Positions 6,055 to 38,541 of a stretch of 64,000 nucleotides of DNA are shown here, in pieces; position 1 is the stretch's first letter, and every line of letters starts with the position of its first letter. The position numbers and the translations under genes are program-made. This DNA comes from Paragordius varius (Eukaryota; Animalia; Nematomorpha): contig OZ176051.1 in assembly GCA_964247055.1 (NCBI GenBank), positions 6,758,001-6,822,000 of the forward strand, in the 5' to 3' direction. The notes beneath the pieces were generated by a model. It did no database searches. It was not told the origin of the DNA and worked only from the letters and a program-made list of their open reading frames with translations.

Positions 6055-6873
6055 GTGTTTTTGTTTTTTACGAGTGTTTTTTGTAAGGCGTGCAGGCCAG
6101 ACCCGGACAGTCGCTGCACGGAGGTGGCCAATAGGGATAAGGAAGGTTGTAGAATGTGTTTTGCCAGTATAAATGTTGGTTCGTTAAAAAGTAAGTTATA
6201 TGATTTAGTTGAAACTATGAGGGTAAAAGTAAATTTTTTGTGCATTCAGGAGACCAGATACCGTGGAAATGATACTAAGACGTTAGAGGGTGATTATAAA
6301 ATGTTTTATTCAGGTTCTACGGATGGTTACAGTGGGGTCGCCATAATAGTGTGCCCAAGATTTGCCAATCAAGTAATTGAGGTTAGACGTGCTGACAGTA
6401 GAATTATAAGTGTCGACCTATTGTTAAATAAGAGGGTTTTTACTATCTTTAGCGTTTATGCCCGCCAGATAGGGTTAACTAAACCGGAGAAAGATAAATT
6501 TTATGATTTGTTAGACGCAGAAATGACTTCATTAACGAAAGACAGAGAAATTATATTTTGTGGTGATTTCAATGGGCACGTGGGACAAAATAGGAGAGGT
6601 TTTGAGCCTTGGCACGGCGGAAAAGGTTACGGGGTTATAAATGAAGAAGGGGCTAGTTTATTAAGATTTGCCCAATCTTATAACTTTGCTATAACAAATA
6701 CTTTTTTTACTAAAAGGGATAGCCACTTAATTACCTACGAAAGTGGAAATAAGAAGTCACAAATCGATTATATTCTAGTACCACGAAAGTCTTTAAAGTG
6801 TGTTTTGGACTGCAAAGTGATACCTAACCTGCAGATTAGCACACAACACAATTTAATTATGTGTAAATATTGA
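6055..6873 (+). pseudogene. RTE apurinic-like endonuclease (APE) domain
   Basis: Motifs NVGSL, LCIQETR, GVAIIV, GDFNGHVG, SQIDYILV; the frame ends in a stop before the RT domain. Confidence 0.9.
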
Positions 6874-7332
6874 CAGATATACCAATAAATGCCAAAAAGC
6901 CTAAGCTTATAGCGCCGAAGGTAATTAAATGGGATTCTCTAAGAAACAGTAAAGAAAGATTTGTAGAAACGGTAGGCATACTAGACAGGAACAGTGATCC
7001 AGAAAGTGTTTGGTCTCAGGTGGCAAAAAAAATAAGAGAGGCGGGAGTTAAGGTGTGCGGAATGAAAGGTGGCAGAAACCAGGTTTATAGAGAGGCATGG
7101 CTGAAAGACGAAAAAATAATTCTGAAATCGCGAGAGAAAAGAAAAGCTTTTAAAATGTAAAGGTTTACCCACCAAGCAGAAGACAAGGAAAAATATAAAA
7201 GGATTAATAAGGAACTTAAAAGGCTTGTAAGATTGGTCAAAAAAGAAAAGACGGCATCATTGAAGAGTTAAACAGCAAGGTCTAAACAAAGTTTTTAAAA
7301 TTGCTCGACAAAGACACAGAAGAAAGCTGGAC

Positions 7333-8913: not shown

Positions 8914-9200
8914 CCGCTCGAAAGAGTGAGATCATATAATGTAATTATTATTATTATTTTAGCATAAAGTTGGCTGGTTATTGGCCTCACTTATCCCACA
9001 AATTATTTTGTTTTAGTCATTATAACTAATTAGCAGCTTTTAAAAACATTTCACTTTTTTGGATTTATTTCTCGATTAAAGCTTTAAACCCCTGAACTTT
9101 TCTGGATTGAAAGATTCTTATTTTTCCTAAAATATATGACCTGTCATTTAAAAAATAAAATTTTGATCATTATATAATATGTGAATGTATGTATAATTAC

Positions 9201-12200
9201 CGTCTATAAGAGTTTTTAGGCCTAAATACGTAAATAATTAATCATTAAAATTTATCGATTAGATTATAAAATCGTAGGAAAGTTATTTTTTTAAATTATT
9301 ATTTTTGCGCAATTTCGAATTTTTTTTATTAAATATTTAAATATTTATTCCAATTTTATTTTCAGATATTCAATTATCATTTTTATCTTTTTGCTTTTAT
9401 GCGGTGTAATGGCCTTTTTAATGCTGAAAACGGAGGGTCATTAAGATATGATAAGTAACAAACCTTCTACAAGATTATCCAAATCTAAGATATAATTTTA
9501 TATATATTATATCACTTCGTATTTGAGTCCGTAGTGCATTCCAATAGTCTATTATATGTTTGTTTTACAAATAATGGAAAAACTCGAATCTAGAGCTAAA
9601 AATGAATAGTTGTGAAACCTCCAAAAAGAGTAGTCATTCGTTCTTCTCCTAAATAAATATTATTTGTATCATCATAATATAAATCAATACCTTCAATTAT
9701 GACTAAAAAATTATGGTAAAAATAAAAATCATCATTACAGGGTACTATAATTTCTGACCCTGCATCTGCTTTTTTCAAATCCCAGGTAATATGTATAGTT
9801 TTAATTTTTGGGCCACACAATAGTTTAATAATTGCGAGTTATATGGTCCTATATATAGCTATTTTTGTCTCCTAATTTAGCATAACTTTTACCCGGTTTA
9901 TTGTTGTTTGGAGTTCGATTTTTAGAATATTAACTAGTCTTATTTAAAAGCTCTCTAATAGTAATATAAATATATAAAAAAGCAATAGTCTGGTAAAATA
10001 AAATGCTCAATTTTATTAATTAATATGAAACAACATAATGAAGTCTTACATGAGTTATATTATAATGATTTAAAGTTGTCAAATTTTAGTCGAAAATATT
10101 GTTATACTAGATTAAAATTCAAACAGGTTTGTTTACATGGAACCGTAGTTCCTAGTTTGATCCAGAGGGTAAAGATAGAAACTGGTATAAAAACATTTAT
10201 TAATTATTTTAAGCACTAGGAATCGAAACTAATCCACATACCATTTTCCCTTTTTATATAAATTAAAATTTAAAATCAAAGCATTTTTCAAGAGGTCAAT
10301 CACCAAGGTAGAACCAGTGTTTATATTTTTAATTATTGCATTCAACATAACTTAATTGCTGTATTTTTAATGTTTACTTTTTGTTTTTTTTCAGTTTCTG
10401 CCATCATATAAATGGAAGCTTGTTCTGATAAAAGCGAAGCCGGTACTCATCCCTATAATTTTCTTTTAAATTTGAACTCCCACGAAAAATACGGCTATCA
10501 GCGGGAAAGTAAAAGGGAAAAGGCCTGCGCAATAATTTAAGGTCCCAAAATTACATTTTTAAAATCTATATCAGCTTCATTTTTATACCCAAGCAAAAAA
10601 AAGGATCAAGGTTATTATATGCAGAGGGCGCCGACTTTGGTAATTTTTTGCTAGATAATCATTACAGATGTAATGTTGTATTTTTATAAGATAAATACTA
10701 TAAATTATATATACATGATTCTAGTGCATTGAAACCTAAACATGTATTTTATACTAATAAAATAACTTGCACACAAATGGTTTACGTCTATATGAAAATC
10801 ATTATCAAAAAAATACCCTCGGCAAAATCGGCCATATCTTATTGTAATGAATGTCATTTATCATATTTCAATAAAAATAATAGAAGGAATCTTACAATTG
10901 ACAAGTTGTTGATATGCTATAGATACATATAACATAGACATAAAATTATTTAACTAAAATTATATTACCATATCTCAGATGATTAACACCTAAATATGTA
11001 TGTATAATAAATGGATATAAAATATATTTGTTAATGAAATGAAGGTATGCTTGAAAAAATGGGTTCAGAATTCATAAAGGGTTAATTTATATTAGTGAGA
11101 TTATTAAGAGCCATCTACCAATCACAATATTATTTTGTTGATCAATATCATTTCGAATAATTATTATATCAGCTTTGCCAATGGGCAAACAATTGAAAAA
11201 TTTTGGTCTAAAAATTAAATGTGTAGAAAAATATTGTATTTCAATTATAAGAAATCAATTTAAAATATAATGTATCGGAAAAACATTGTTTAATCCAACT
11301 CCAAACCATTAGAACTTAATTCCCGAATTTAAACATATCTTGGGTCGTTTGGTTATTTTTTTAAAAAAATACACCTAACCAAAAACTGTTTGTCAGTATA
11401 GGTTATAACATTTAACTTAAGTAAAACGCTAAATTTTTTATTATGAAAGACGGAAAAACATACAGACAAATATTATTTTTCAAAAGACCACTCTACCTTT
11501 TTAAACTCGATATTTTTATTATAACTTATTATTTTCAATTGCAAAGTATAAAGATGTTAATTGACACATATCTATATATGATTATGTAATTATATAATTT
11601 ATACAGATATATTAGATTTAAAAAAAATAAGGTCGTCTATTATGTTACTTTTAATCTGTAATTCAATTTTTACTGTATTACAATATATATATAATAACAA
11701 ACCCAATGTAATCCCCTATTAATCTTTCAACAAAGTTTGGTTTAACTATATTAATAGCAAGAATGCCGCTGTTATTTTTATTAAGCCAGACCCTCAAGCT
11801 CAAATTATCATCTTGATAGATAAGAGTGAAAACTTATGGTTCAGGCTTAATAAAAATAATACATTATACCGAAAAAAACCCGATGATATACTTAACTTCG
11901 GGTAGGTCTATGTATCAGGATTATCATGGTTCATTTGCTTTTGACCCTTGAGATTGATGAAAGTTATTTACACTATTGTATGTGGTAAGAGCTATCGTTA
12001 AATAAGTGATATTCTCAAATCGCTAAAATGTATCATAAACTACATATAAAAAGTAAACAATATTTTTTAAAAATTAGATGGTTCGGAGAATTCCAAATTT
12101 TTCTTCGAAAATGAGCTAGCTCTTTTAAAAAAACTCAAAATTGCCTGGATTCACTGACTTAAATTTTGAATATATGATAAATTTTTATATTAACTAAAAA

Positions 12201-15200
12201 TATTTTAAGAATGATGCATATATTTTTTGAAACTTAATTTTTGGAATTTCTATGAAGACTACTTCATACTTTTTTGAGGAATGATGGAAACGGTAAATTA
12301 CCGCTCTAAGACATTATAAAAATACTTTTTGTAAATAATTCGATAATCCTTAACATTATCACCTCATATTTTGACTAAAACATTCGTCCGTGTTCAAATT
12401 TATGTTAAATTAATGTGTTTTTTATATAAAAAAAGCACCAAAATATTTTGGCAAACAAACATTTTAATAAAGATCTTGAAGGGATATGCATATCTAATTA
12501 TGTAGAAAAAGTGTTTTCATATCAAAGAACGTTTGTAAACCGTGTCCATCATGACTAAAACTAGTATGAAGTAAGCTTTATAAAATTTTATTAAATTTTT
12601 GAAAATTTAAAAATGTTTTTTAGTTGATATCGAAATTCAATATATATTTAAAATTTGTTTCGCCAATCTCGGCATTTAAGAGAACCAGCCCATTTTAGAA
12701 GCGAAAGAATTTGGTTTCGAAGCTCACATTTAAATTTTTTTTGATATTGTTTTTCCATGAAGCATTAAGATTTCATCAAAAAAATTTATTTAAAAAAACG
12801 TGCGCAAATTTTCATTTGATACGGAGCACTTACAGTAAAAACTGAATTCATACGAACACGTAAAAGACAAATTTTTTTCTAAAAGACATCCATACTTTTC
12901 AAATCTTGATTTTACAACTGATTGATTTAAATGGCAAATCGTGAAATAGAGATATACATTACTAACACAATCAATTCTATATTTAACAATTGCAACTAAA
13001 TAGCTTTTATGAGAAAAATTAAGGTTTCAAAAAGTATGGTCTTTTAGATTAATATTTTTTTTATATTTTAACGTTTTGTCCGTATAATTTCAATTTTTAC
13101 TGTACAAAAAATATCTCGTAAGGGCTAAAACCTACATGATAATCTTGATACATATTGCTATTATATTTTATCAGGTTATTTTTTATACTTCCCGTTTTCG
13201 GACGCAGTGTTATGGGGCAATTATGGAGAGCAGTGTATTGATTTCAACAAAAAAATATTTTAATTTTTATGTTGCTTTCTAGCTTCTAAAAACCTTAAAG
13301 CTAATTATATTTAAAAATATCTATATTGGTCAAAAATATGTATTGTATAAATACCCATATCGTTCATTTCTTGATCCTCTTAAAAATGTATAGTGTTATA
13401 CCTGGAGAGATGGATTCTTCCGATTCTACAATAAATTGGTATATGTTCTTTGAAGACAAAAATATTTTCTTTATTAAAATAAGTTAAGCCCTGTTGTTAA
13501 ATTACAATTAAGAGTATGAAAACTGTAAATAAACAATCTTACCCGTTTCATAAGGATTATCTATTTATATATAAAATTAATTTATAAAATTGAATAAAAT
13601 TGACTATATAAGCATTAGATTTATAATCCATACTATTAATATTTTCGAGTTCTAATTATAAAAAATAAAATTAGAATATAATATCTTTGCGGGCAAATAT
13701 AAATGCATTTGCCAAAGATATGACATGTTTTCCAAATAACCAATCATGAATATAAGTATATTAGTTTTAAAACTTTACATTTTTTCAATTTCATTTTAAT
13801 TTATAATTTGTTAAACAAATTAAGGACCATAGGAAGAGCACGCCTGAGCAGACATATGTAAACTAAACAGGCTTAAAACAAATTTATAAAATCATTGTGC
13901 TAAGTTTTTGAGCCATTTACTATATTTTTAATAAGACGGCTCTATCATAAGTCCTGAATGATTAGCCTAAACTTTGCTTTATTTCGTTTCAAAAAGCTTG
14001 TGAAATAATCAAATGATACAGTAATTTGAAGCACATCTTTACAAATAATAAGTTTAAAATTGTGCGGTGTAGCCAAATTTAAACGTTATATATATATATA
14101 TATATATATACTGTGTGCAAAAAAGAGATTTTTTAACAAAAGAAAATTTTTTTCATGAGCTAGCTTACGACCAGCGAATTCATTTGCCGTAAAAATTTTT
14201 ATTTGTTGACAACCTAGTTTGTGAAATATGAGAAAATCGAAAGGACAAAAAGTAAAAATTTAGGATAATCAAGGATAAATCAAAAAATAATGATAAAACT
14301 CAAGATATTATGGTTTATTATCATTTTAATAATTTCTTCAATATGTAAATAGCCTAAAATCATATAGTTAGGGTTTCTATAAAATTTCAAAAGATTTTTT
14401 CTTTTAACACACTTAAAAGACAAAAAATTTTTAATGAAACTATATTTAAATAATTTTATAAATTATTTACTACCAAAACTCGCTATTAAAATCATAACAT
14501 TCATATTTTATACAGTAAAAGACATATATAATAAAACCAAAATTATTGTTTTTTATTATGCATTTTTTTGCCATCTAGTTTATGAGTGTATAAAAAATTT
14601 ATACTGTTTTATTTTGGATTCTTACATGAGTGCGATTATATATAGTTTATGTAAAATAGAATTAAAAAGTGTGGAATATCAACCAACAATCCGTAAAAAT
14701 CCCAATAAAAATATTAATTTGTTATGAAACAGACTTGTTACAGAGATTTATAAGGATTGTTGGTTGATATTCCACTACTTTTAAATATTGCATAAATTAT
14801 ATAATTAATCATGTAAGAATCCAAAATAAAACAGTATAAATTTTCATACACTCATAAACTAGATGACAAAAAAATGCAAAAATAAAAAACAATATTTTTG
14901 GTTTCATTTTGATATATAAGTTTTTTTACTCTATAAATGAATGTTAAGATTTAATAATGAGTGTCGGTAGTAAATAATTAAAAAAATTATTTTAATATAA
15001 TTTCATTAATATTTTTTTAAGTGTGTTAAAATAAAAACGCCATCTTTGGGCTAAAATTTTATAGAAACCTAACTATATGATTTTAGGCTATTATATTGAA
15101 AATATATCCAAAAATGATAATAAACCATATTTCATGATTATTTTTTAATGATTATCCTTAATTTTCACTCTTTGCCCGATTTCGATCTTCTTTCAATATT

Positions 15201-18200
15201 TCAAAAACCATGTTGTCAACAAATAAAAATTTTCGCGGCAAATGAATACGCTGGTCATAAGCTATCTCATGCAAAAAAATTTTTTGCACACAATGTATAT
15301 ATATATTTATATATATCAAAAATCAAGAGCTAACTACTTTGTTAAATAAAGTCATATCTTATTATTCGAGAAAATTAAAAAATATTTCGCGACATTTAAA
15401 TTACTATTACTAGACTTAAAAATGATCATAAAGGGCCTCTAAAATAAAAATTTTAAATTTCTGACGGGTTGACCCCAAGTATATTAAAAATATCTAATGA
15501 ATTAAATTTTGATGTATATTTCTCATTAATAACTCGGAAGTTTTATGGAAGATTATCACACCTCTACGAAATTCTGAGTTTAGTCAAAGCATATTTCAAA
15601 TAAAATGTATATTATAATATAAACCAAAGTTTTAAAGCCGTATTTTATATTTTTACCACTGATTCCATCATCGATATCTTCTGTAAATAAAAATTAATTA
15701 TGATTTTACCTTCAGGTCGGACTTGACTTTGTTCAGAGTTGGGATCTAAAATATTTTAATAAAGCCAAAATGATATTCTATATTCAATTTATTTATAAAT
15801 ATTTAAATATAAATATACCGGAAACGGGAGCTGTATATATATATATAATTAAAAAAAGTTCCAGGGAATAATTTTAATAATATTTTCTAAATTTATATAC
15901 GGTTAGTTTCAGATGAAGAAAATGAAGATAACGAACTATCTGTAAATAATAGATATTAATACATCACAATAAATACCGTCAGAATCTTCAACATTGGATA
16001 AAGGATCAGTTGATAATTGTTGATCTAATATAAATTTATTCCCAACTAATTGAACAACAATCGAGATAAATGACATAATCAAACAACACAATAATATTTA
16101 AATAAACACAAAACATAAGTAAAGAAGGATTTTAGTTAAGAAATTAATATTCATTAAACAAAATGACTAAAACTTTGAAATTTGGTAGACACTAATAAAA
16201 TATAAATAAAAACTCCTAAGGTTCTACTTTATAATTTTAAAAGTCTATGGAATCAGGATTAGAGATAAATTCAAGAGATTTATAAAATTTTCCATATGAG
16301 TATTTAAAATATACCAATATAACTAAAACACCAAGTTGTCTAAAAACGCTTAGTTTGACTATCTTATTAAATGGCATTCAAAACATGTGAATACATGTTC
16401 ACTACCTAAGAAAAGGAAAACGTTCAATCTAAGAACATTTCGAAATTTAGTTTTATTATAAATAGAGCCATCTATACATTAAAGCATTAATGTTTTAGTA
16501 TCTAGCTAATTTTATTTAAACTATTTTATTTTTCCCTCTTAAGTAGCCAAAGGTTTAATTTATAAAAGGTTTAAACACTTAAAATGATATTTTAATTAAT
16601 ATTTCTTTACATTTTACAACATATTTGTATTTTGGACGTTTAACTTATAAAGTAGAAGATTGAATCGCAAGCAAAATTTTATAATTTCCTATAAGCTATT
16701 TGTAAAGTTTTAGCATAATATAAGTTTTTGAATTTTTATTTCTTCTATATGGCGTATGGCCTCTGAATTTTAGGTCAAAGCCCATCATCGATTACATTTA
16801 AAATGTGAATCCCACCAAATATGACACATTTTATAATATAACTTATTTTCAATACGGGAGGAGCTGGTAAATATTATTAAATATCCGGAATATAAAAAAA
16901 TACTAAAAAATTAGATACCTTTTATGCAAACGATTTCGCCTCTATTCTCGTTTTTGTTACAAAATAATTAACGATGAGAAGATAAGTAAAAACTCTTTCT
17001 AACCATTACGCTTATTTATCATCATTCTCGATGACTGTCATTTTTAAAGCATAACTCCCTATCTTTCAACACACGTTAATAATGTGAGGAAATTTGCCAC
17101 TTTTGCGGCAAAATGAGAGAGAGTAATTTATAAATTAATTTAAGTATTTAAATTACTGTTCATTATTTCTTTCAATGGATTTTCAGTTAAGTATATAAGA
17201 AAAACTATTTCATTTATTTGGGGTGTCTAACACTCAAGGTGGATTGATTATTGAAACTCTATTTATTATAATTTTATCTGTTTGCATAATCCTAAATAAA
17301 AGGCTATTTGTTTCAAAGAAATTTATCAATGCTTAATAAAAAATAACCTGTATTCGCGGGTGTACTTGGTTGAGAGTGGGCAGCGCTTGCAGGTATTACT
17401 GGGGCAACATTTGTAGCCGAAGAAGCTAAAGATCCTAATTAATGAATATTCGGTTTTTATTTTTAAGATTTGCAATAAATCATGTGAATATAATATAATT
17501 AACCATGAATGTTTTATAATTAATCATTGCTTATATATGTAAACTTACCAAGAGTTGCTAAAATAAACAGTTAACCTTATAATACCTAGAGATCCAACTG
17601 TGGCTAAAGTTAAAGATAGAGAGAAATATATTTGCAACAGATTCCCAATTTAGATCAACTTAATTTTATAATATTTTAATATGCACTATACAAACAAAAA
17701 GGGCCTTAATATACCATTTTTGAGTCAAAAGCAACATTTTTTCATGTAAACGCAACATTTTTAAACCAAACGCAACATTTATATCAACATTTTTTTAATT
17801 GTCTGAATTGCCTTTGGTTAAATTTGTCCTTTTGACTAATAATTATAAACGCGTAAATATAGAAACGCCCTTTTAAACCCCTGGCCGGTAAATTAACTGG
17901 TGTGAATTTTTTTTGTCATATGCAGTATGATAATTTACGATTTTTTTAAAAAAAATAATAAATAAAGCAAATAGTTTATCTAAAGATACTATTTTTGTTC
18001 AACTAAAATCTTTTTAAAAATTTACCAAATATTTAAGCTTTTATTTTAGCGTTAAAATGCTAATTGTATTTGAAAAAAATAAGAGATTTAATATTTTGTA
18101 TTATTCTTTGATCTGCATTTAAAAATAGGATATAGCTACATCTTAAGTCTCATTTTTAATATTCGAAATATTCCTTAAATTAACTATTATGGCCGAGCGG

Positions 18201-20224
18201 GTATTTTGTTATCGTAAAAAATATAACATTTCTGAAGCTACCTGCTAATCCAATGGCTAAATTAAATTATTTGAATGTAAAATTAAGCAAATCATTTTAA
18301 AATTCTGTTTTTATAGCATTATGCAAGTGAAGTCAGATATTAAATTTATATTTCATTTTTTGCTAGATTCTACTAAAATAATGAAACACTTAAAAAATAG
18401 CTTAGGATTTGAGAATTAGTAAGGATCCCACTACTGACTTTAAACTCCTTACTATAAAAATAGAATTGTTGCGGTTTAAGTTTTTCTATCTTATAATTCA
18501 ATAAAATTAAAGGTAAAATTTAACCCATCGATTTTTAATGCACATATTAATTTTTTATAATTTATCATGTAACTTGGTTTGGATCTGATATATTGTTAAC
18601 GTATAACATTTTTTTTATAATTTGCTATTTATTTGATAACTAAATATATAATATTAATTTTAATATTTGAATAAAGTGTTTTGAAACTTGGATGAAATTA
18701 AGATATTTAAGAAATCTATAAATAAATAAATAGAATATGTTCTTTTATATCCAATCAGATAAAAAATATTTAGATATGGCGGTTACAGACTAAAATTTGC
18801 AATTATGACCAAAGAATACACAAGATCAGAACAGAATATTTTTCAAATATCTGAAAAATTTCTATTTTAATTAAGTTAAAATGTTTATAAATATCTTGGT
18901 TATTTATTTAGATTTTTAGATCATATTCATTGATCTATTATAATACTCTCCGATATGTTTCACATGTTGATAGGGTTTGATATGCTGACATATATAAATA
19001 GGCGTTTTGATCATATGAATAATCAATTATTACTTTTTGCAAAGGCTTTATAATTTATGAAACTGTGCTTGGTGATGTTCCCAGTCCTGTTAGATGATAG
19101 ATCCGAGCCAGATAAAAGCTCCACTTCAGGAATCTTAATTTTTATATAATAAAAAAACAAAAAAGTTTTTAAGTCAAATCTATAAAATTTTAGATGGTCG
19201 CCCAAATGTGGATTGAAGTTTTAAAAAAGTAGGTAAATTAAAACAATTGTTCACCAATTTTTTTTCACATATATATTTATTATTACTATGCTTTATATTG
19301 TGAGCCTGATGTTTGGACACTCACTATTACTACACATTACGATTCAATCCAAAGCTGTGAAAATGCAATATAGTACAAAATCCTACGGTTATTGATTCAT
19401 TTTATTTAAGTATTTGTCAGAGCCATGGAAGATTTTATGGCAAATTTTGGCTTATTTAATAGAGAGATCTTATGATAAAATCATAAAATTAATAAATAAT
19501 TAAACTTATTTTACCAAAAACATTTAATCATATATAAAAAAATGTTGCTATAGCTGGTATTTTGAAAGTAACTAGCGATAATTTATGTTAAATTACCGTG
19601 TTACAAATTTTTGTAATAATCATACCCCGGATATATCTAAAAGTATTAAGTTTTTGCTAAAATTATACTTTTAATACGAAAGAAGATCAGTAAGGGTGAA
19701 TTTTCTAACATATTAGTTATTTAAATACCCATTTGTAAGCTGTAGTTACGAACTTAATTATAAAGTTGTTTCACTTACTTATTTCCCTGGCTAATTTTTA
19801 AAATAATAAAATTTTAAATTTTTGTGACTTTCTGACACTGGTATTTGAATTGGCAAATTACAACAGCAAATGATAAAATTATGAAATTTATTTTAAAAAA
19901 TAGATATAATTTCATTGTTTATTATTACAAGTTTTTTAAAATTTAAGCCAACTTAATGATAATTATTATTGGCAATTACATATTTTATTAACACTATTTT
20001 TATATTCATAGAAATATTTACCATCAAAATGATATTCCGTAATGTTGGCGATACCTATATACAAATGTGAATAATAGATATGTTATAAAACTTTATGCTA
20101 AAAATAAAATTTTAACATTTATAATTAATCCAATATCCATAAATATAAAAAAAACTAATGTACACAAGGTAGAGAAAATATATTTTGATAAATTTGCAAT
20201 TAGATTTGTTATTAGCTGTGTCAT
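9201..20224 (-). CDS. Micro-exon gene 2 (orphan, paralogue of gene 1); at least 27 exons, 3' end not resolved
   Basis: Hand-built open chain, all AG/GT bounded: 20224-20164 (ATG, MTQLITNLIANLSKYIFSTL), 20054-20022, 19790-19779, 19752-19729, 19704-19678, 19636-19626, 19133-19034, 18485-18390, 18256-18242, 17603-17586, 17557-17549, 17434-17348, 16024-15977, 15939-15901, 15830-15819, 15745-15710, 15680-15657, 13425-13402, 13378-13355, 10181-10137, 9765-9739, 9702-9691, 9648-9619, 9595-9584, 9548-9516, 9484-9464, 9221-9201. Nearly all are symmetric phase 1; several exon lengths and peptides match gene 1. Individual exons are uncertain. Confidence 0.65.
12833..13102. mobile_element. Tc1/mariner-like MITE
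   Basis: Imperfect TIRs cagtaaaaactgaattcatacg and cgtataatttcaatttttactg, flanked by TA on both sides; related sequence near 11450-11680 and 21595-21848. Confidence 0.7.
14111..15295. mobile_element. About 1.2-kb imperfect palindrome (foldback-type element) in (TA)n, inside an intron of micro-exon gene 2
   Basis: The arms are diverged reverse complements along their whole length, centred near 14725 (e.g. ggaatatcaaccaacaatcc / ggattgttggttgatattcc; tgtgtgcaaaaa / tttttgcacaca at the ends); TA runs flank both sides. Confidence 0.8.
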
Positions 20225-25212: not shown

Positions 25213-28200
25213 TCAGATGGATGTTGTGTAGCCACTTTTAGTAGAATTTACTATTATGGGATTGGACCATTTGTATTTACCTAATCTTTTTATTCAATTT
25301 AATTGTAGAATTTATCTAACTTTATTCTGTGAATTGGTTAATTTGACATGTCAATTTGCCTGGATTTTGCTAGCAAGTCTCTCTTATTGGGCTTTACGAT
25401 TACTTATTGTTATCTTCGCCATATCTGGCATAATTGGATCGCTTGGGGTATATGCAGAGCTTGTGCAGCCGCCCGGATCTATCACACTATACATAAGCCC
25501 CTTTTAGATTTTTAATACTTTGGCTCTTAGCTTGTTTAGTATCTTATTTAATGCCTAGAATTTTGTTATTCATGCATGGAATATTACTTGTATCGACTTG
25601 TTCGTTTGAATATTTAAACATATGTACACGAGGAATGATTGTTATTTTTAAATTAAACACAAATTTAAAAATTAAATTTCGGAAAAATCTTATTGGTGGC
25701 CTCAATTTTCTTTTTTGTTTTGGCCTTTCCATGCCATTAGGTATCAGAAAATGCAAAAATAATGGGGTGGTGCAAAACCTTGTTGATTAGTGTTATTTAT
25801 TCAAGTATGCTTACGTATTTCCTCTTCTATAATCATATAATAATGGTTTAAAATTCAAAACATTCTGTTTTTGTAATTCGATTAGTAATACAGTGTTAAA
25901 ATCACTGCGATCCCCTGCAGGCAGCCGGTTCTGCCTTAGGCACCCTTATTTAACGATGAAAGAGTAAAAAACTTTTTTTGCCCGTTTGCAGCATATAATT
26001 ATATGATTACACATAAAATCAATGCACAACACATAATATTAAACAAATCTGGTTATATTATAATGTTGGTTTTAAATCCCTAAATTAGAATAATGATATA
26101 AATCAATACTTACGAATCATTTCTAAATCTAAAATAAAATAATACAAATTGTTGGGTGTAGATATTTTTAATTGGGTAAGTTGTTTAGGGAAATGTTTTT
26201 AAAATGAGCGAAAATGTGATATTATAGAGCATAACGAAATTAATTTACAAGCGGTAAATTTTTAATGATGCTTATAATTTTGAAGTGTCAATATACTGGA
26301 TTATATATTATATATTTAATCAGTTAATTCCTTATTATATGTTAGCGTAATTAAATAATGACAAATTATTCACTTTTATTGATTGTATTATTATATAAAA
26401 AAATTTATTTCGATGTTTTTGTTTGTGTTTAATTATTTATAAATTATTATAACTATTTAATAACGATTTTATAACCATGAATGTGGTGACAGTTTAATAA
26501 AAGGGTATTATAATTTATATCTAAAAAATTTTTTGATATATTTTTATTGAAAAATGACATAGTCACGCCTTCCTTTTTTACAAATGTTTTTATACATAAC
26601 AGATGCATTTGGTTTAATAATGGAATAACAGTCAACTGTGTTTATAACCGCTGACCATTTATAAACTGCCAATTAAATATATACACTTATTAACATCTAT
26701 TGTCCGTAAAATTTGATTTTGTGTTAAAAGTAACTTCTTAATTAAAGGATTAATCGAACATATGATTATCTTAATTCTAAATTTAACAATTTCAACCCCA
26801 GAGTTAGAGATCTATGTTATTTATCAATATAATAAATAATTACAATCAGTGCGATCCAAATCTAGATATATATAGTTTATTAAAATAGGTAGCAAAACGA
26901 AGCCACTTTGGAGCTTTGGCGTTCTAATTTTTTTAGTAAGAGTTGTTGATAGGATGAGCCTACGTTATATGTGAGCTCTTAATTATCATTAGTGAGTTTT
27001 TTATTTGGGATGATTAAAGATCTATGAAAATGAGCCTTAGCCATATTTATCCGTGTGAGCTGGGTCAATTAAATTGATTCAAGTGATTTAAATGGCTTTT
27101 GGGACCCATATCTCAAAGTTGCCCCGAAAAATATTAATATTTTAAACCATATAATTAAAAATTAAAAGCAATATGGCTTATAAATCATATTTTAAATCAT
27201 GGCTCTCAGTTCCTCAAGAGGTCTTCCAAAATTACAGTTATTTTTACAATATTGAGGGGTTGATTATTTTATTTGGAAGATATATGCATAAGTTAAAAAT
27301 TAGATTATTAATCCTATGCAAGTTTAATTTTTTTTTTCCCTATTAGCAAACTAATCTCATAACTGAATGTATTAGCCCAAATATCAATATTGCTAGTATA
27401 TTTCGCTTATGATGTTTTCCATTTTATTATCTTAAACAACCATAAAACACTCCTAAATTATTTTTTCCAAAATTTGTGTTAATAAAATCATAATATACGT
27501 AAAATTTTTATTACCTTCGATTGTTATCATATCTTCTATAATTTAAATGACAAGTTAAAAAAATATAATCCAAGTAGCTTTTGGTAAATAACCATACAAG
27601 CAAAAGAGTTTATCTTTGTGCCATATCTTATTTACAATACACGTTTTATAAATTAGTAAAAAACAACATGTACGGCTTCAGGACCTTACTAAAGATCCGG
27701 TTAACCTTTTATTAGATTCAAAAATATTAACGGATTAATCCTATGCATAATTTAGGTCTGGTATTATTGAATAAAATAGAACCACCGACTATTGGTTTAA
27801 TTATCTATATTTATATCTATATTTAGAAGGTATTAGGATTTTTTGAAGAGATATTTAATCTTAATGTGCATATACCTATTTCTCAGTTCTCTTGACCCAG
27901 TAAATTAAAACAATTGTAGTAAAAACAATTAATGAAATAACATCTTTAAATATTGGGGTTTTCAAAATACACAATATCATTTTAATTATACGATATCTAT
28001 CTCAATCTTTAACTTGTAATAAAGATTTACCGTATATTCTTTCTTCCAACGCTAAACGGATAAAATGTTAATTAGGTGTAAATAAACCATTATTATACTT
28101 GCGGCAGTGTTTGATAATTCTTCATTTGAATCATATGCAGTAAAAAATAAAATTATTGAGACCAAACACGTAAAAAAGAATAAGATTAGTATTTATGTCG

Positions 28201-31200
28201 TGAATAATGAAGGAAATAAAAATAAATATATTAAAAAGTTTAATTTTCGCTTAATGGCATCATCAGGAGTTAAAAAAAATTAAATAAGATTTAACAAAGA
28301 AATAAATTAAATGAAATTAAATGTGTGACCAATCAATAATTATAAAATTTTATCATTGTTGGACCTTATTTTAAGTTTTTTCTTTTAACAACTCCTGATG
28401 ATGCCATTGGGCGAAAATTTGAGTCTGTGATAAATTTATTTTTATTTCCTTCATTATTCACGACGTTAATACGGATCTTATTTAACAACCGTTCGTCGTC
28501 ACCCACACAATTTTTTTTAAAAAAGAATATTTTTTAAGAAAAACATATGTTTTAACAAATTTTTTCATATACGATAAAAGATTATATTTGTGATATATGA
28601 AATTAGTTTGTTACCAATTCATATCTCTATTTCCCGATTCGCAATCATAAATAATATATTATATAATGTATTTCAATAATATACCTTCAACCATTGTCTT
28701 GATATCTATATAATTTCAATAAAAAAAATTTTCATGTACCATTTATATGGTTTCCTAAGCCATCCATGAAATCTTTCAATTTAAATAATAATATTCACCA
28801 ATGTGGCCGATTGCTATAAAATAAATTATAGAATATTTTACATTAATGCAAGCTTAAATTAAAATTTAAGCCCGAGTGACCAAATTTAGAATTGATATTG
28901 TGCGAGGCATACTACCAAAAAATAATTGTAAAAAAATTCGAAGCTTTTAGTGGTCAATTTTATAAATAAAAAACGTCAACATGTATGACCCAGAACCATA
29001 ATTTAAATATTTTATCAAAAATATTTTTAGCAATGGCCCAACTTTCGAAATGTTCTTTTTGATACAAAAAATTCTTTTTAAAAAAGGAAAATCGTAAATT
29101 CTTGTCTCCAGCCCTCTGAATCCCATAGTTTTTCTCTTTTATTATAAATAGTCAATACAACAGCCAAATAAATGTATATTATGGTTGAAAAATATATTTT
29201 TGCAAAGTTTCCACCCGAATCTAAAAAAATTAAATTCTTAATTTTATCTAGAGATAATATTAATGATTTTCCAAACAGTAGTTGCTTACTGCTTTAGTGC
29301 TTGAGTTAAAAACTGCCCCAAAATGAAATCGCGTATAAAATTAAAATGTTATAGTGTAATAATTTTAATTCAAAAAATAAATGTATAATTGGGAAGATTT
29401 TTTTTGATAGACCTAAACAAGCAAATATTAGTTTGAGCTGAGAGTAATCCGATTTTTTTAATTACATAAACTTTAAAAAGAAACTTTAATTGTGGCATTA
29501 ATTTACTCGTTTTATGTATATATTTTAACCCTGGGACAAAAACACCCATGACAAAAATATGAAACGAGCTAAATCATTTTATTACAATTATATTTATAAA
29601 ATACCTAAATTTCATAATAATTATTATATTTGAGAAATTAAATAATTTAAAAAAATTTTAAAATATATAGTCAAATTATATTGAAGTTGCGCTTGATTTA
29701 GGGTTGAAATTCAATTTTTCGATTAAACTTGACCAGAAAAATAAAATATGAGTAAGTTGAATTTATGGAAAATATTAAACGAAAGTTAAATCATTCAGCT
29801 GTTTTTATGACTCGAATGGGTAATACTTTGAAAAATAAATTTAATAACTCGGGTTTTTTTGACATTTAATAAAGCGTACAAAACGAAAAAAAATCAGATT
29901 TTAAAATATTAAAATTCCATAAATATTTATTAAAATGTATATGAGAATGTAAAAGGAAAAATCTAGCTGGAGTGTTTCGTGTGTAAATAAGCTTAGTTTT
30001 TCCATTCTGCCAACATAATTATTGGCAATACAATGAATTACAAGCCTAGGTACCTGAGATGGAAATATATATATCTATATATATATATGCTATTTTAAAA
30101 TAACATAGCAAAATTTTATATTCTCAAGCTTTTTTTTACAAAATGATACATTTCGCTCAAGTTCTTAGAGGGTTAAGCTTTAAAATACAAAAAGTTAAGT
30201 AGTTAGTCACTAATAAACACTAGTTCATTTTTTTCACTCTTTTTTTGATGGAGATACTTTTATTGAAATTTTAAATAAAATCATATTATTTCAGGATGAT
30301 TTCCTTTAGATGTAAAAAATATTAAGTTTTTTGAACAAGCGTGGGTTATATGCACTTAATATTTTCCACTGCAAAACATCCAATTTGGTTATAAAATATT
30401 TTAAAACCACTTCATTCATTATGTCATTTTATTTTCTTGATATCCAACATAATTCTAAAATAAGCTTGAGAGCTGTTCAGATTTTATTATGCCAATAAAA
30501 AATTATAAAACCCATATTTTGAAGGTACATTACATATATCGTATAAAAACCTTTTTAGTAAAAATATGATAATTTTCCCAGCTTACCGTCGTAAATGGAT
30601 TCAATTCTGTAAACTCCATTAATTTCTAGGACTAACAATAATTAAAATTATAATTTATTTATTATAAAGTTATATATTAAGTATTTTTCGACTTCGAACC
30701 TGAACCATTTTTAATTTTTGGTTTATTTTTTGACCGCCTTGGTTTTATTTTGTTGTGAAAACCAAATCGGTTCGGTTTCAACCTTACAAAAAACTCATGG
30801 TCCCGGTTCCGTTTTTCCTGGCCTTGTTTGAAGTCGTCCATTTATTTGTATTTAAAGAGATACATGTTTCGAATCGTTCAACAGCTAAATTATTTTATGT
30901 GGATTATTTTTTTATATCAATGATACCCCATTCTAATGATATTAAACCTGTCGTAATTTTAAATATAATTAATGAATGATACTATCTCGCAAAGCCACAG
31001 ATGCTACAAATTATTCTAATTTTTACAATGAATTATTTCCTCCACCACTAGCAAAATTATAATCATGTTACTTGATGATAAATGTTCAATAGCTAAATAA
31101 ATAATAAAATATATACATTGTCGTTAAATTAAACCATAGAATTAAAAATACAAATAATTATAATCTTTTTATCCGAAATGGTACAGGGCTCAAACACCAT

Positions 31201-34200
31201 GAAGAATCTTGGATATTAAAGCTAAAAAGCCTATTTAACATAAAGTAATTTTTTAAATGAATTTTAAGTGTTTTTGTGGTTTAGATAATTTTGGTATGTT
31301 AATAGAAAATTTCTTCAAAATATGAAACAATGAATAATCGTGTGATTCATATCATTAAATACTATATATTTAACCGCACCTGTACAGCAAAGTCAAACAT
31401 TTTAGTTTGATGTGATTTTGAATTAACCAAATATAATTTTAAATTTATAATAAATCTTTAAAAATTGGCTAATAGTCCAAAAGATATATAACTAATTCAC
31501 ACATATTAATACACAAAATAATAAAATATTTCATGGAATAGGAAATTAGAAAATAGTACTAGACTAGTTTCGAATTCTCAAATAGGAATCCACTATAAAA
31601 CTGATTATATGAGTGTGTGCAAAATCTGTTATACAACTATAAAATTATTTAAAATACTTTAAAAATATTATATAAGGGAGTAGCAATGGTTTGTAAGTTA
31701 GAAAATTAATTAATATTTACTATATGATGGTGCCAAAATTATGTTAGCAAACCATGCAAGATCTCTTATGTAAATCTTATAGTTGTATATCAGATGTAGC
31801 CATTCATATAATCAGTTTGATAATGATCCTTTTTAAGAATTCGAAACTAGTCTCTGACATTTGATAAATTGTCAATTCCAATAAATATTTTATTATTTTA
31901 TACCTTTCGCAAATAAAATTTATTAATTAGAAGTTTTTAATTTATTTTCCTTTGATTTGTAGTACCTTATTAATTTTATATAACCAGGCATAAAAAATAT
32001 CTATTTAAAAATATTACCCAATGAGTTGATTAAATTATATTCTAAATTATATCGATTCGAAATACCTCGGGAACTCATTGATGAAATGGATTCATCTAAA
32101 AAAGGGGATATCAATTTGTAAAACGTTCTAATATTAAAAAAATGCAAAAATGAGTTTGCCTCCAAATTAATATGTCGCTATATTTCTTATATTAGTTCAT
32201 TATTCTATTTGTTTATAGTTGTAATTCATCATAAATTAAACGTTATTTTATTCTAGTAAATAAATGATTTTTCCAATATTTAGAATTGGATCAAATTCAA
32301 ACCTAAAAGAAGTTAATCATATTAAGGGTTTTATTCGCATATTTGTTAATGAAGTTGGTTTTGTAAAATTTAATCGGGATTAAAATAGATAGAGCCACGT
32401 TCTACATTATTATTGATAGATTAATACTGTAATAATCATATCAATAGTAGGTTAGCTAAATTAATATTTAACGAAACACAGAAACGCATATTAGCACTTA
32501 TTAATAAAATGTGATTATTAGTTTTCTATTTATATCTTCAATTCTTTGACTTATCAAAACTTTAATACGCGATCGGTTAAATATTAAACCTTTAAAAATA
32601 AATTTAATAAATGAATTTTTTTGCGATTTCTTCATAACATCATTTTAAATTATTTTTATAATTATAACCAGCATTTTCCATTTTTATAAATATATAGATT
32701 ACCAGAGTTTGGGGATATAGGTCTGTCAGCTATACAAATGAATTAATTTGTATTTTTAATATTTTAGCTTATAAACATAAAACAATATATATATTAAACA
32801 AAGATGAGACAAGATGTTGTCGAATTGTCCTTTAAGTTTAAAATAAATTTAAAAATAATCATAGGTGACTCTAACATATTTATTGATTTAACCAAGTGGA
32901 CCCTCAAATAAAATATTTTTTAAATACTACAAAAAAATTTTTAATTATTAAATAAATATGTAAAAAGAGGTGTGATATAAGCGTCAGGAGGTCTTTTTTG
33001 CAAAATTATTAATTCCTAATTAAACCTTCTTAATTGGGAATATTAACTAATAAATTTAAACATCATAAATTAAAAATTAAATCAATTAAAACGTAAAAAT
33101 ATAAAGATAAATATTTTTTAAAAGGAAACCATGCTTTTTAATCTTTTATTTTTCCAATATTTGTAAGAATAAATGATTATGTTAACAATATTATCTTTCA
33201 TATTTAAAGCATTAAAGTCAAATTTAATAAGTAGAGCTGTGTTTTGGGAAAAATATTTTTCATATATTTATTTTTCCCTATGATTTCTTTTTTATTGTAT
33301 CTTAGAAATCTATGGGCCAGGATGTGACTGTTAAATGATTATTTGATATTGTTTTAGTTAACACCATTTATAAGCTTAGCCCCAAAGTATCGAAAAAATT
33401 ACCATTTGGAATGTTATTCGGTGAATTTGCTGGAGCTAAATGATAATAAACACACATTGTACGTAATCAAGATATTCAATTAAAAATTATCTGAGAGAAA
33501 AATGTATCAGGATATCAATAGTTAGAGCTTATTACTAAAATGCCAGTACAATGTATATATAAGTTTAGGGGTGTCTAACATGCAGTAGGCCTATATTACA
33601 GTCTCATACCTTGGGCAAAAAAATACAATAAAAAAATTATTTTTGTGGACTTTATTTTTTGAAAAAAATGGCATTTTACGCGGGTAGCGGGTAAAAAGAG
33701 GGCCTAAATCAAAAAAGTGAGTCGACTATGTTCGGCGCGATCAAAAATAAGTAAACAAAAATCATATTTGAAATTGAATGGTCCAACACGTTCTCCGGAA
33801 AATTGTTGCAACCTGTTTTTTACACGGGGTAGGCCCGAACTGGGGGCCTAATTACAAAAAGGGCGAAGCTATTGTCGGACATTTATTAATGATTATATTT
33901 TTTCGATTGGATTTGAATGGGTTCACCGGTTTTCGGGAAACAGATGACAAAGTTACATAAGGAATCAGTTTTTAGCGGGTAGTCCTTACCCAGCAGCTAT
34001 CATCTAAGAAACGGTGGACTAAAATTTTTGCCCTTTTAACAGGGAATACGTGGAATCCATATTGAATTTTTACGATTCGATTAAAAAAATATTTTTGTGG
34101 ACTTTGTTTTTTGAAAAAGGTGGCATTTTACGGGGGGAGCGGGTAAAAAGAGGGCCTAAGTTAAAAAAGCGAGACGACTATGTTCGCAATCAAAAATAAC

Positions 34201-37200
34201 TAAATAAAAATCATATTTGAAATTAAATGGTCCAACACGTTCTCTGGAAATTGTCTCAAAGACACGATTTTTGTGGACTTCTATTTTCAAAAAACCCATT
34301 TTTCACACGGGGTGGGCCTGAACTGGGGGCCTATTTCAAAAAAGGGCGAAGCTATTGTCGGGGCATTTATGAATGATTATATTTTTTCGAAGTTTGGATT
34401 TGAATGGGTCTACCGTTTTTCCTGTACCAGATCACAAAGCCAGCATTTTCCATTTTTATAAATATATAGATTATCTTTTCTTATAAATTTATATATAATA
34501 AAAACAAAGTGATAAAAGTTCGTTCAACAAGGCTCATACGGCCCATGGGCTGCATGTTAGTTAAATTTGATCTATGGCACACATTATGAAATTCAAATTT
34601 ACTTGAAGTAAAATAATAAATAAAATTACCTTCCGGGACATCTTCAGGTGAATCCACTGGTGGAACTAAGAATATAACGAATTCAAATATATATAAATAA
34701 TACTATAAAGAATATTTCATAAGATTAGAAGACTAATAAAACAAATTTTGGTGAATATAGCTAATTTTATATGAATCTTCTTATAAAGTACACTACATCT
34801 GGGGGCATAAAAATATTATATAGCTTTATGAATTATTTAAGATTTCTTATAATTATATTATTTTTGGACTCGTAATTCGGAAACAGTATTACATATCCTA
34901 TGCTAAATTAAACTTTTTCTAAATTTTTGGTAGATAAAACTAATTATAAATACAGTATGGTTAAGAATACATTGCTAGAAAGTTATTATTGCCAAATAGC
35001 ATATACAACAAAGTATTGGCTTATAGTTATATTTTCACTTTTTATTATTATCAGCCAATAATAATTCACTGTTGCATATACTATTTGGAGTTAATAAATA
35101 ACTTTCTAACAATATATACTTACTCATACTGTGTATATATGTTATACCGAGTATTTGTAACTAAAATAAACCAAGTTGTACGATGGATACTGATACATTA
35201 ATAATTTATTTTATTTAGATCTAATTTTTTAAATACCTACAAATAAATGGATTTGATCAAATATTATCAGCTCAGACATCAAAAATAATATATGTCATCT
35301 AACCAATTAAATTTAGGGATTGTATTAACGGCAGAGGCCGGATCTTTCGACGCCACGCCCTTTACTTGTTTACCAATTTAATAAATATAAAAAAATTATT
35401 TTTTGAAACCAAAAGACGATTCAAAACGATGTAAAATATCTAAAATCATAATCAAACCTTTTAGGGAGTTCGAAAGGCAGATAATAAACGACCGTTAAGA
35501 TAAAATACATCAAGTCGTTAGGAAAAGCTATGATTTTATATATGCTTTTATATTAGCGCGAATAAAATTGAATTGGAGTTAAAAAATATCAGCGCATAAA
35601 TCTAAAATTATTAACCTGAATCTCCGTTGCTCGCTTGATTCAGAACTTTTTTTAAACATATAATCTTACTAGAATCTCGATCCGATGAAGAAAATGAAGA
35701 TAGAGAATCTAATAATAAAGTAAATATAATTTTACCAGTTGGCTCGTTGGAATTACTAGGGTTGGCCTCTAGGGAATAAATTCATAACAAAGAACAAGTA
35801 CCAACCTTCAGGAGGATTTGGATTTGGGCTTTCTATAAAGGATGTTTCCATCGATATGGTTAAGTTAATAATAAATTTAAAATAATCTAAAAACAATTAC
35901 GAATTTCTACATATTTATGACTTAAATTATTTATATTTTACAATAAATACGAGCCGCATAAAAATTTGTCTAGCGAGCCAATCTAATTATAACAACTATT
36001 AAAGTTACAGGGCTGGTAGAAAATTTGTAATCAAAATCTACTGAATACTTTCTTACATTTACATTTTCATGGATATTTTTGATTTGTAATAAAAAGCTGT
36101 TGCAATTTTTTAATGGTTATTAGCACTTTTTTGTTTTTAAGAATTACAAGAGCATCCCCATTTTTATGATTTAAAAATATTCTTTTTTTTCATTTTATCG
36201 TTTTATTTCAAATCCTATCTGATTGATTAATTTTTACCAGATTCTTGCTGTCCCAAATTAATGATTTCTGAAGCTGCCTGGACGGTTTCCAAACCTGTCG
36301 AGGTGCCTTCTGGTGCTAAAATCCCTAAAAGTTAATGTTCTATAAGGATATGAAATTAAAGAGTTGCTTGCACATGAAAACATACCCAGAGTGGCTAAAA
36401 ACACTTTAAATTTTATATACCCACACCAGCGATTCCAGCTAAATAAATATTAAAAATATATATATCTTATCGATAAAATTCATATTTAATTTTAATAGAG
36501 CAAATATGAAAAAAATATAACACATAACAACCTCAAAGTCAATTACTCAAAATAAAAATACACATATACCTGATAATCCAATAGCTAAAATATTAATTAA
36601 ATATTTTATATATTGATTTTAGTATTTTTATATCAAAAGATTATTTTTTTCCAATTTGGCACTGGCATATTATTACTTATTTATGTAAAATTGACTTTTA
36701 ACATACTATGTAATCAAATCCAAAAATTCTTTCAAATTGGGCTTATAGGGGTAATACATAAACTTTTATTAACCAAGCGTCGCTCTAATTTAAACAAACA
36801 AGTTTTTATGCAATATGGAATAATATTAATTGGTTAAAACTAAAAAAACTTTTGTAGGATATGTACAAAATTATCATATAGTTAAAAAGCACACCATTAC
36901 CTTTTGGTGTAGTTTTATGTCCCAGAGGGGTTTGAAATTTAAATATCAAATGTATTTAAGGTTTTAAGCCGAATTTAAATATGCTTTCTTAAGCCTTTTA
37001 GGCGCATCAAAAAAAGTTTCATCTCAAACATTGCCGTTAATTTCTATAATATTAAATCGCTAATGCAAGGCAAATAAATGTAAATTATGCTTATGTAAAA
37101 TTAACTTTAACAAGCGTTTTATATATTTTTATCAGCTGTTCGTTTCAATCGTGTTTTGAGGCTGTCCCGTTTTCAGACTCAAAACAGTAAAAAAAATAAA

Positions 37201-37776
37201 CTGGGCAAGATTTTAACATAAATAATAATAAATGCGGAATCGACAGAGTAGGGTTTTTACGCTCCCCTTTTTTGCTATATCTGATAATCCTTTTAGAGAT
37301 TTCGACTGTCCTGTAATACTATTTTTTTGCTATTCCAATAAATTTATTTTAAATGAGAACAATGTTTTAATTTATTTAATATAATTTTCAAAACTGTAGT
37401 ATATTTACAAAATTGAGCATAGGATATAATTCCAAAACAACATGTGAAAAGGTCATGAAGTGTTAAAATCTTTTTTATAATAAATTTATTGCAAAAAAAG
37501 GTAATATCCATTTTTACATATATGTTAAGTTATAGTTATGCCCAGAACCAAAACGTGCGAAATATTGAAAATATTATATATATCAAACACAATTTATGTA
37601 ATATATTTTTAAGTAAATACTTTTAGCTAAAGATCGATAGTTAACAGACATGTGTTGTAGATATTTTGTTGCATTTTTTGTTTTGTTTTGGATAGCAACT
37701 AAAACCAATTCTTGATTCTGATTAACATTAAATAGTATTAAAAATTAAAATTATGAGACTTAACAATAATCTGGTA

Positions 37777-37815
<39 letters not shown>

Positions 37816-38541
37816 CAAATGTTCACAATTTTAGGTCATTTAAATTTTTATTTATGTTAGAATATAATATATAATACAAAATCTTTAACTGAAAAACTCG
37901 CTTGTTTTTATAAATATATGTCTTTTATGATGCCAATGGCAATATGGATCCGAATACCTTTTTGTTATTTAAAAAAGCAACTCTGTTAATTTCCAGTACA
38001 TATCCCATATATACTTTCCATAACCGTCTTTTTTAAAAGAGATTACCATTTTACTGAAAATTAAAAATTATCTTTACTCATATATATAAAAGCCTTTTAA
38101 AAAGCACTAACTTGTGTATTGTCTATACAAATATTAGTGATTAATTCAAATACTTTTCGTCAAGACTCTAAATAAAAATATTAATGGAATTTTTTGGCCC
38201 TCTAGTATTTTAGGAGTCATGTATACTCGGAATTGTTTTGCTATAATTTTCAACTGTAACATTTACATATATTTTTATACAGGCTTCTTTGGCAACTATA
38301 AATGTACAGATTAAAAATAAATACTTTGTTGGTGCGATTTACTAGCAATGTTTGCCATATTTTTGGACACTAAGATATATAGTAAATATAAAATCAATCA
38401 TTAAGATTTTTTTAAAATATTATTTATGAGCAATCATATATGAATTAGGCCTTTTTTCTAATGATAAATAAATATACCCATAAATGGAATTAGAACAACA
38501 ATCCACACTAATGTAGTTTTGATAACATTGTTCGTTAACAT
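25213..38541 (-). CDS. Micro-exon gene 1 (orphan; signal peptide, hydrophobic segment, Ser/Pro/acidic region, heptad-rich C-terminal half); best model 36 exons, about 392 aa
   Basis: Hand-built open chain: 38541-38478 (MLTNNVIKTTLVWICVLIPFM), 38369-38325, 38295-38281, 38240-38227, 38167-38154, 38122-38112, 37698-37621, 37310-37245, 36584-36570, 36438-36421, 36394-36386, 36324-36238, 35832-35806, 35768-35736, 35708-35670, 35645-35616, 35189-35172, 34665-34630, 33435-33403, 32729-32703, 32095-32066, 32041-32018, 31221-31198, 31047-31027, 31003-30983, 30947-30927, 30884-30864, 30631-30587, 29568-29530, 28813-28799, 28772-28740, 28705-28685, 28051-28031, 27535-27515, 25478-25404, 25280-25213 (TGA). 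31 of 34 internal exons are symmetric phase 1. The two last exons are the least certain, and it could be two genes. Confidence 0.65.
28181..28480. mobile_element. About 300-bp hairpin MITE
   Basis: Long inverted arms: gtcgtgaataatgaaggaaataaaaataaa...aatggcatcatcaggagtt versus aactcctgatgatgccatt...tttatttttatttccttcattattcacgac. Confidence 0.75.
31561..31853. repeat. Perfect 18-bp inverted repeat pair (possible MITE ends)
   Basis: agactagtttcgaattct at 31561-31578 and agaattcgaaactagtct at 31836-31853. Confidence 0.6.
33566..34560. mobile_element. Degenerate non-autonomous hAT-like element with an internal tandem duplication (period about 450 bp)
   Basis: Inverted ctaacatgcag / ctgcatgttag near the ends and a Charlie-like left terminus taggggtgtctaac; GC-richer blocks 33641-33935 and 34093-34425 are diverged direct copies. 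Confidence 0.55.
37779..37810. repeat. (TA)n microsatellite (others near 1928, 14088, 23727, 49250 and 56400)
   Basis: Directly visible TA run. Confidence 0.9.

Follow-up and report, generated by a model that had tools for sequence, protein, structure and literature searches.

How finely can a gene be divided before it disappears from a list of open reading frames (ORFs), and is such division put to use? The question is raised by 64,000 nucleotides (nt) of Paragordius varius DNA (contig OZ176051.1, positions 6,758,001 to 6,822,000 of the forward strand; hereafter the window, whose own numbering is used throughout). No ORF of at least 100 amino acids (aa) is present between 9 and 55 kb, in agreement with an earlier note that had described part of this interval as looking non-coding in the ORF track, and had proposed that short islands bounded by AG and GT on the minus strand are the exons of one gene. 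Curation of a chain of GT-AG exons on that strand, conceptual and drawn from sequence alone, gives 27 exons running from an ATG at 38541 to about 26072 (gene A), and a tandem paralogue (gene B) lies in the same window. That gene A is a real protein-coding micro-exon gene on the minus strand, with about 27 exons between these positions, is probable. With regard to how its transcript is processed, constitutive splicing is as likely as combinatorial splicing.

Structure of gene A

The joined coding sequence of gene A, 744 nt, has a stop-free frame of 247 codons. Each of its 25 internal exons has a length that is a multiple of 3 and lies in phase 1, the range being 9-87 nt and the median 21. All 26 introns are bounded by intact GT-AG, and the islands are bordered, as read on the minus strand, by tttag at the acceptor and gta(a/t) at the donor. 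Exon GC is 0.40 and intron GC 0.25, so the description of the islands as relatively GC-rich is borne out. By length the introns are of two kinds, 11 short (23-61 nt) and 15 long (108-1881 nt), and the short ones link micro-exons into clusters (exons 5-7, 8-11 and 16-20), each about 200-230 nt in total. As 7 of the 11 short introns are not multiples of 3, the frame survives only with their removal. Introns of this size are credible in this genome, since a TRF4/PAPD5-like nucleotidyltransferase gene elsewhere in the window requires removal of a 22-nt GT-AG intron (54523-54544, plus strand) for its conserved Leu-Pro-x-Ser-Asp-Ile-Asp motif to be in frame.

The exons of gene A, all on the minus strand, are as follows (a slash marks an exon boundary).

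Exon 1, 38478..38541: 64 nt; ATG at 38541; signal-peptide-like; phase-1 end; donor G/gtatat
Exon 2, 38343..38369: 27 nt; alternative 45-nt form ending at 38325
Exon 3, 38281..38295: 15 nt
Exon 4, 36570..36584: 15 nt, IGLS; the B counterpart is 15 nt, IGLA, with 13/15 nt identical
Exon 5, 36421..36438: 18 nt; equal in length in B
Exon 6, 36386..36394: 9 nt, TL; equal in length and peptide in B
Exon 7, 36238..36324: 87 nt, the largest; equal in length in B; internal TTTAG at +9 common to both copies
Exon 8, 35806..35832: 27 nt, Pro/Asn-rich; weak donor gttggt
Exon 9, 35736..35768: 33 nt
Exon 10, 35670..35708: 39 nt, SLSSFSSS motif; 19-nt identical run with the 39-nt exon of B
Exon 11, 35616..35645: 30 nt; weak acceptor; the preceding 24-nt intron is in frame and stop-free
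Exon 12, 34630..34665: 36 nt, Pro-rich; the B counterpart is 36 nt
Exon 13, 33403..33435: 33 nt, Pro-rich
Exon 14, 32703..32729: 27 nt, Pro-rich
Exon 15, 32066..32095: 30 nt, Ser-rich
Exons 16-20, 30864..31092: five 21-nt heptad exons (31092-31072, 31047-31027, 31003-30983, 30947-30927, 30884-30864), separated by introns of 24, 23, 35 and 42 nt
Exon 21, 30587..30631: 45 nt
Exon 22, 28685..28705: 21 nt, heptad
Exon 23, 28031..28051: 21 nt, heptad
Exon 24, 27515..27535: 21 nt, heptad
Exon 25, 26844..26861: 18 nt
Exon 26, 26114..26128: 15 nt; acceptor score 7.7, donor gtaagt
Candidate terminal micro-exon, 26072..26079: Arg-Ile-stop after a 34-nt intron; uncertain

The acceptor of the candidate terminal exon, at 26079, scores as high as any in gene A, and so small a last exon has its parallel in gene B (9140-9127). 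The earlier note had joined 36 exons and had counted 31 of 34 internal ones as symmetric and in phase 1; the symmetry holds, and indeed is complete in the 27-exon model, but the count does not, as the longer chain probably includes about 8-10 chance islands (shuffled sequence gives 7 or 16). Placement of the 3′ end at 25213 is not sustained either: the exons proposed around 25424-25213 were not adopted, because their acceptors have scores near 0 and an ORF of 83 aa on the plus strand overlaps them. That ORF (25256-25507) encodes a hydrophobic sequence without a match in Pfam, and the DNA around it is GC-richer and strongly AT-skewed. Between 38281 and 36584 no exon is confirmed. The candidates there (37626-37621, 37310... 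and 36784...) are weak and without counterpart in B, and were left out; the corresponding intron is 1696 nt in A and 1765 nt in B.

Comparison with chance expectation

Short AG..GT pairs are to be expected in AT-rich DNA, and the simplest alternative is that they form a chain by chance with no gene behind it. Short islands are frequently open in every frame, liberal criteria yield 7-16 phase-1 islands in shuffled sequence, and the copies of a GC-rich repeat that lie within intron 12 of gene A mimic exons. Against this stands, to begin with, the asymmetry of the strands. Islands that combine GC contrast with a GTA donor and a pyrimidine-rich YAG acceptor number 46 on the minus strand, as opposed to 21 on the plus strand; of the former, 24 have lengths divisible by 3, compared with 6.0 +/- 2.8 (maximum 15) in block shuffles.

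The difference is greater when splice sites are scored by acceptor and donor matrices trained only on the neighbouring paralogue (cross-training), with the addition of GC log-odds, and the best chain of symmetric, stop-free exons is sought with 200 shuffles serving as the null. For gene A the cross-trained chain has 19 phase-1 exons and a score of 54.6, while the plus strand of the same region gives a 2-exon chain scoring 7.7 and a control region gives 1-5 exons. The shuffles have a mean of 2.8 exons (maximum 8) and a score of 6.0 +/- 4.0 (maximum 23.5), which puts gene A at a z of about 12. In the reciprocal test gene B yields 17 phase-1 exons and a score of 47.8, against 3.9 +/- 3.4 in shuffles. 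For both regions, plus-strand chains have 1-2 exons, and the means of the 200 shuffles are 2-3 exons with maxima of 8-9. A comparison with the plus strand and with shuffled sequence was what the earlier note had suggested for its chain, and on both counts the real strand stands apart. As the thresholds are relaxed, the chain on the real strand lengthens to 28 exons and, one level further, to 38, and those in shuffles to 7 and 16; the excess of about 20 is stable. (An unconstrained, phase-free chain search was dropped, as it brought in frame-shifting junk and repeat-derived ‘exons’.)

Within the joined coding sequence the ATG frame has no internal stop, as compared with 14 and 18 in the other two frames, and none of 5000 shuffled versions is open. 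Composition by codon position is coding-like, with position 1 G-rich, position 2 G-poor and position 3 having 70% A+T; it is coding-like in gene B also.

The tandem paralogue

Gene B (9127..20224, minus strand) has 22 exons and 215 codons, and is collinear with gene A. Its exons, all on the minus strand, are:

Exons 1-8: 20224-20137, 20054-20022, 18256-18242, 17603-17586, 17557-17549, 17434-17348, 16024-15977, 15939-15901
Exons 9-16: 15745-15710, 15680-15657, 13560-13543, 13425-13402, 10989-10969, 10916-10896, 10787-10767, 10735-10715
Exons 17-22: 9702-9691, 9648-9619, 9595-9569, 9484-9464, 9221-9201, 9140-9127

A series of exon lengths is common to the two genes: 15, 18, 9, 87, 39 and 36 nt, followed by runs of 21 nt. 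Several of these are landmarks in what they encode, with 15/18/9/87 specifying a hydrophobic segment, 39 being Ser-rich and 36 Pro-rich. At the DNA level, blastn with 9-nt words finds no similarity between A and B, and ungapped identity of the flanks, 36%, is at the random level. The conceptual proteins align at z = 9.9 relative to shuffles, with roughly 25% identity. Retention of exon lengths and splice sites on a background of introns that cannot be aligned is, short of RNA, the strongest evidence that the predicted exons are real ones. A further shared feature is an additional TTTAG, 9 nt inside the 87-nt exon of each copy (36316-36324 and 17426-17434), an exon that is otherwise identical at 25/87 positions. 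It is a possible tandem acceptor, whose use would give a 78-nt form lacking three residues.

The predicted protein

The 21 residues encoded by exon 1 of gene A comprise one Lys followed by a 13-residue hydrophobic run (KD19 1.83), and by this hand rule the N-terminus reads as signal-peptide-like, as the earlier note had it. The product, about 247 aa, would after this start have an isoelectric point (pI) of 4.05, with 15% Ser, 12% Glu, 7% Pro and no Cys; the B product has the same pI and, in its mature part, one Cys. A second hydrophobic segment, Gly/Ala-rich, is pieced together from the exons of 15, 18 and 9 nt plus the first part of the 87-nt one (KD19 1.80 in A and 1.47 in B). The middle of the A protein is acidic, Ser/Pro/Asn-rich and of low complexity. 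In the tail each 21-nt exon encodes one heptad, in which positions 2 and 5 are hydrophobic in 75% of instances in A (8 exons) and 100% in B (6 exons). Such spacing suggests an amphipathic or coiled-coil helix whose register coincides with the exon boundaries.

Some neighbouring exons resemble each other, e.g. VNHL is encoded twice in B, and the first and fifth heptad exons of A are alike. From such repeats it may be inferred that symmetric 1-1 exons were duplicated in tandem as the gene grew, with a later tandem duplication of the whole gene presumably giving rise to B. Since then exon lengths have been retained in the two copies and sequences have diverged rapidly, as is also the case in the micro-exon genes of flukes and the bicycle genes of aphids; selection is the probable cause of this combination. 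The A product most likely enters the secretory pathway. From the structure, exon skipping without a change of frame is predicted to be permitted: as the earlier note had pointed out, any symmetric exon is dispensable to the frame, and of the 325 possible skip junctions in A only 5 create a stop.

A phmmer search of 1.84 billion representative proteins with a stop-free 34-aa piece holding the largest A exon gave 0 matches. As an exact match of 28 residues is estimated to reach about E = 1e-8 in such a search, the library lacks a transcript-derived product carrying the 87-nt exon, and gene A is absent from the public protein sets searched.

Weighing the explanations

A number of points weigh against a functional gene in the form modelled here. 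The exons were chosen with a phase-1, stop-free filter, so that openness of the frame is partly built in; this circularity touches the frame test only, and not the island counts, the cross-trained chains or the looser-threshold comparison. Weak splice sites are those of exons 2 and 19, the donor of exon 8 and the acceptor of exon 11. Where gene A ends is ambiguous, the alternative being a 12-nt exon (25826-25815) that has good sites and is perhaps penultimate. The blank protein search belongs here too, as does the boundary of exon 1 in gene B (20135-20137), which reads ATGG/atattg, i.e. AT for GT, where A has ATGG/gtatat. This AT may be an error in the sequence, a splice site of non-canonical type or the mark of a recent inactivation, and at least one copy may therefore be decaying. 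None of this revives the chance explanation: a disparity of 19 exons to 2 between strands, the distance from shuffles, coding-like codon positions, and a paralogue with identical exon lengths and a significant protein alignment leave it scarcely credible, and as far as sequence alone allows it is already refuted. Decay deserves more attention, as the exon pattern could be the relic of a dead or dying copy that has no present product, and the AT at the exon-1 donor of B, the LINE (long interspersed nuclear element) sequence about 200 nt beyond its stop codon and the unmatched piece of the largest exon would all fit. Nevertheless it is highly unlikely, given that gene A has kept GT-AG at every intron and that there are 0 stops in the 247 codons of A and 0 in the 215 of B; with about 9% of random codons being stops in DNA of this composition, openness would soon be lost without selection.

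If the gene is real, the nature and use of its product come into question. One possibility is that the second hydrophobic segment anchors the protein in a membrane and that the product is not secreted, in which case there would be a signal and a transmembrane helix, or a hairpin, with the acidic and heptad parts cytosolic. In A the segment exceeds the usual KD19 cut-off of 1.6 and follows the first hydrophobic run at a distance of only some 15 residues; no other part of the exon pattern is as well conserved as its 15/18/9 nt. The B segment is Ser/Thr/Gly-rich and below the cut-off, however, and in both proteins small residues abound in the segment, which ends in Pro, so that membrane anchoring is judged unlikely. 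Slightly less so, though still on the doubtful side, is the proposal that the locus generates diversity in the manner of flatworm micro-exon genes (MEGs), with combinatorial skipping of symmetric exons producing variants of a secreted or surface protein at the interface with a host. In its favor are the uniform phase and length divisibility of the internal exons together with the rarity of stops at skip junctions, the signal-peptide-like start, the fast divergence of the tandem paralogues, the possible tandem acceptor nine nt into the 87-nt exon that both have kept, and the description of schistosome MEGs as working by exon skipping (PMC4350168, PMC7653826). Yet the search with the piece from the largest exon brought no transcript-derived product to light, conservation of exon lengths between diverged paralogues fits constitutive use equally well, and skipping of a heptad exon, while keeping the register, shortens the helix. 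For the earlier note as a whole, its observation of a hidden gene of tiny exons is partly confirmed, and its interpretation as a diversity system partly supported.

Surroundings of the two genes

GC content is about 25% throughout the window, a value in keeping with the 26.9% published for Gordionus montsenyensis, though such agreement says little about identity. Other features recognized in it are:

6055-8913, plus strand: LINE with Exo_endo_phos ORFs
33628-33952 and 34080-34439, in intron 12 of gene A: two copies, 79% identical, of a GC-rich element
32668-32701 and 34440-34473: exact 34-nt duplicate, the one copy at the start of the intron right after exon 14, the other beside the duplicated element
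28179-28482, 31515-31899 and 34945-35139, in long introns of gene A: foldback inverted repeats with arms of 43-100 nt, resembling miniature inverted-repeat transposable elements
About 63200-63450: N run (assembly gap), giving X in ORF translations

The LINE ORFs, which have an endonuclease domain, end about 200 nt past the stop codon of gene B, on the opposite strand to it. AG..GT islands within the intron-12 element obtain exon-like scores, which makes them false positives in a search for micro-exons; three of them (34155-34132, 33847-33824 and 33703-33680) were rejected as exons of gene A because they are within this tandemly duplicated repeat. Recognizable genes in the window, apart from A and B, are the TRF4/PAPD5-like one (PAP_assoc), an exon of CBP20 with up to 88% identity to animal CBP20 fragments, a mark of an animal source, and a phosphoglycerate-dehydrogenase-like exon. 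A homologue search with the TRF4-like ORF as query came back blank, and Rfam found nothing over the window.

Comparison with known micro-exon systems

A published operational definition of a micro-exon gene requires a minimum of 7 exons, of which half or more are micro-exons under 70 nt with lengths divisible by 3, and a run of no fewer than 4 such (PMC7653826, Olson et al. 2020). Gene A has 27 exons and gene B 22; in A, 24 of the 27 are micro-exons of this type (every internal exon but the 87-nt one), and they are in runs of 5 and 19. The earlier note's assignment of the locus to the MEG type of architecture is to this extent justified, and a second system, the bicycle genes of aphids, shares the phase (PMC9168663).

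As in the MEGs of Schistosoma and of the tapeworms Echinococcus and Hymenolepis, the coding region is mostly in tiny symmetric exons with lengths divisible by 3 (PMC4350168, PMC7653826, bioRxiv 2023.06.21.545858). MEGs have an N-terminal signal peptide; the start of gene A is signal-peptide-like by a hand rule. Common to both are rapid divergence within the family, a structure overlooked by gene finders, and exons whose skipping would leave the frame intact. The differences are considerable. MEGs have been described as restricted to platyhelminths (PMC4350168), and gene A is from a different animal lineage. Introns of a Schistosoma MEG are 0.1-5 kb and its exons 10-20 in number (bioRxiv 2023.06.21.545858), whereas about half of the A introns are 23-61 nt and there are about 27 exons encoding 247 aa, compared with at most 189 aa for MEGs. 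A tail with one heptad per exon has not been described for MEGs. No sequence similarity to MEGs was found, the largest exon (34-aa piece; 0 matches) being what was searched.

Bicycle genes, known from Hormaphis cornu and other aphids, have about 17 exons on average, with many tiny internal ones nearly all starting from codon position 2 (PMC9168663); 25/25 internal exons of gene A start at this position. They likewise combine a signal peptide (a signal-peptide-like start in gene A) with extreme sequence divergence and conserved gene structure (PMC9168663). Unlike them, A and B lack the defining paired CYC motifs (no Cys in mature A and one in B), and the source animal is not an insect. The design of gene A, with a tandem paralogue also present, can then be termed MEG-like or bicycle-like, the kinship to either being one of likeness in design. 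With neither a sequence link nor CYC motifs, independent evolution, as the earlier note had supposed, is a plausible origin. The features that are A and B's own are the ultra-short introns between micro-exons and the tail with one heptad per exon. A literature search revealed no paper linking micro-exon genes with hairworms, and in the hairworm genome literature searched exons and introns go unmentioned.

A broader extrapolation would be that a lineage that is neither flatworm nor insect, probably the horsehair worms, has independently evolved a genome-wide family of such unannotated genes whose exons are variously combined to yield secreted proteins acting on the arthropod host. Taken in full this is quite unlikely, more so than the diversity reading of the present locus; were it to hold, the family members would be candidate effectors of a parasite known for manipulation of host behaviour. 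Long runs of same-phase micro-exons behind a signal peptide are on record in the MEGs of parasitic flatworms and in the bicycle genes of aphids and their relatives, and both encode fast-evolving secreted proteins aimed at the host. A third, unrelated lineage with this design would strengthen the case for a convergent solution over that for a flatworm oddity, would demonstrate that in this genome an entire gene class escapes standard annotation, and would supply concrete candidate effectors. The local twists, i.e. a heptad for each 21-nt exon, close packing of micro-exons between introns of 23-61 nt, and lengths that are kept while sequence drifts, also bear on how very small exons are recognized and how they originate.

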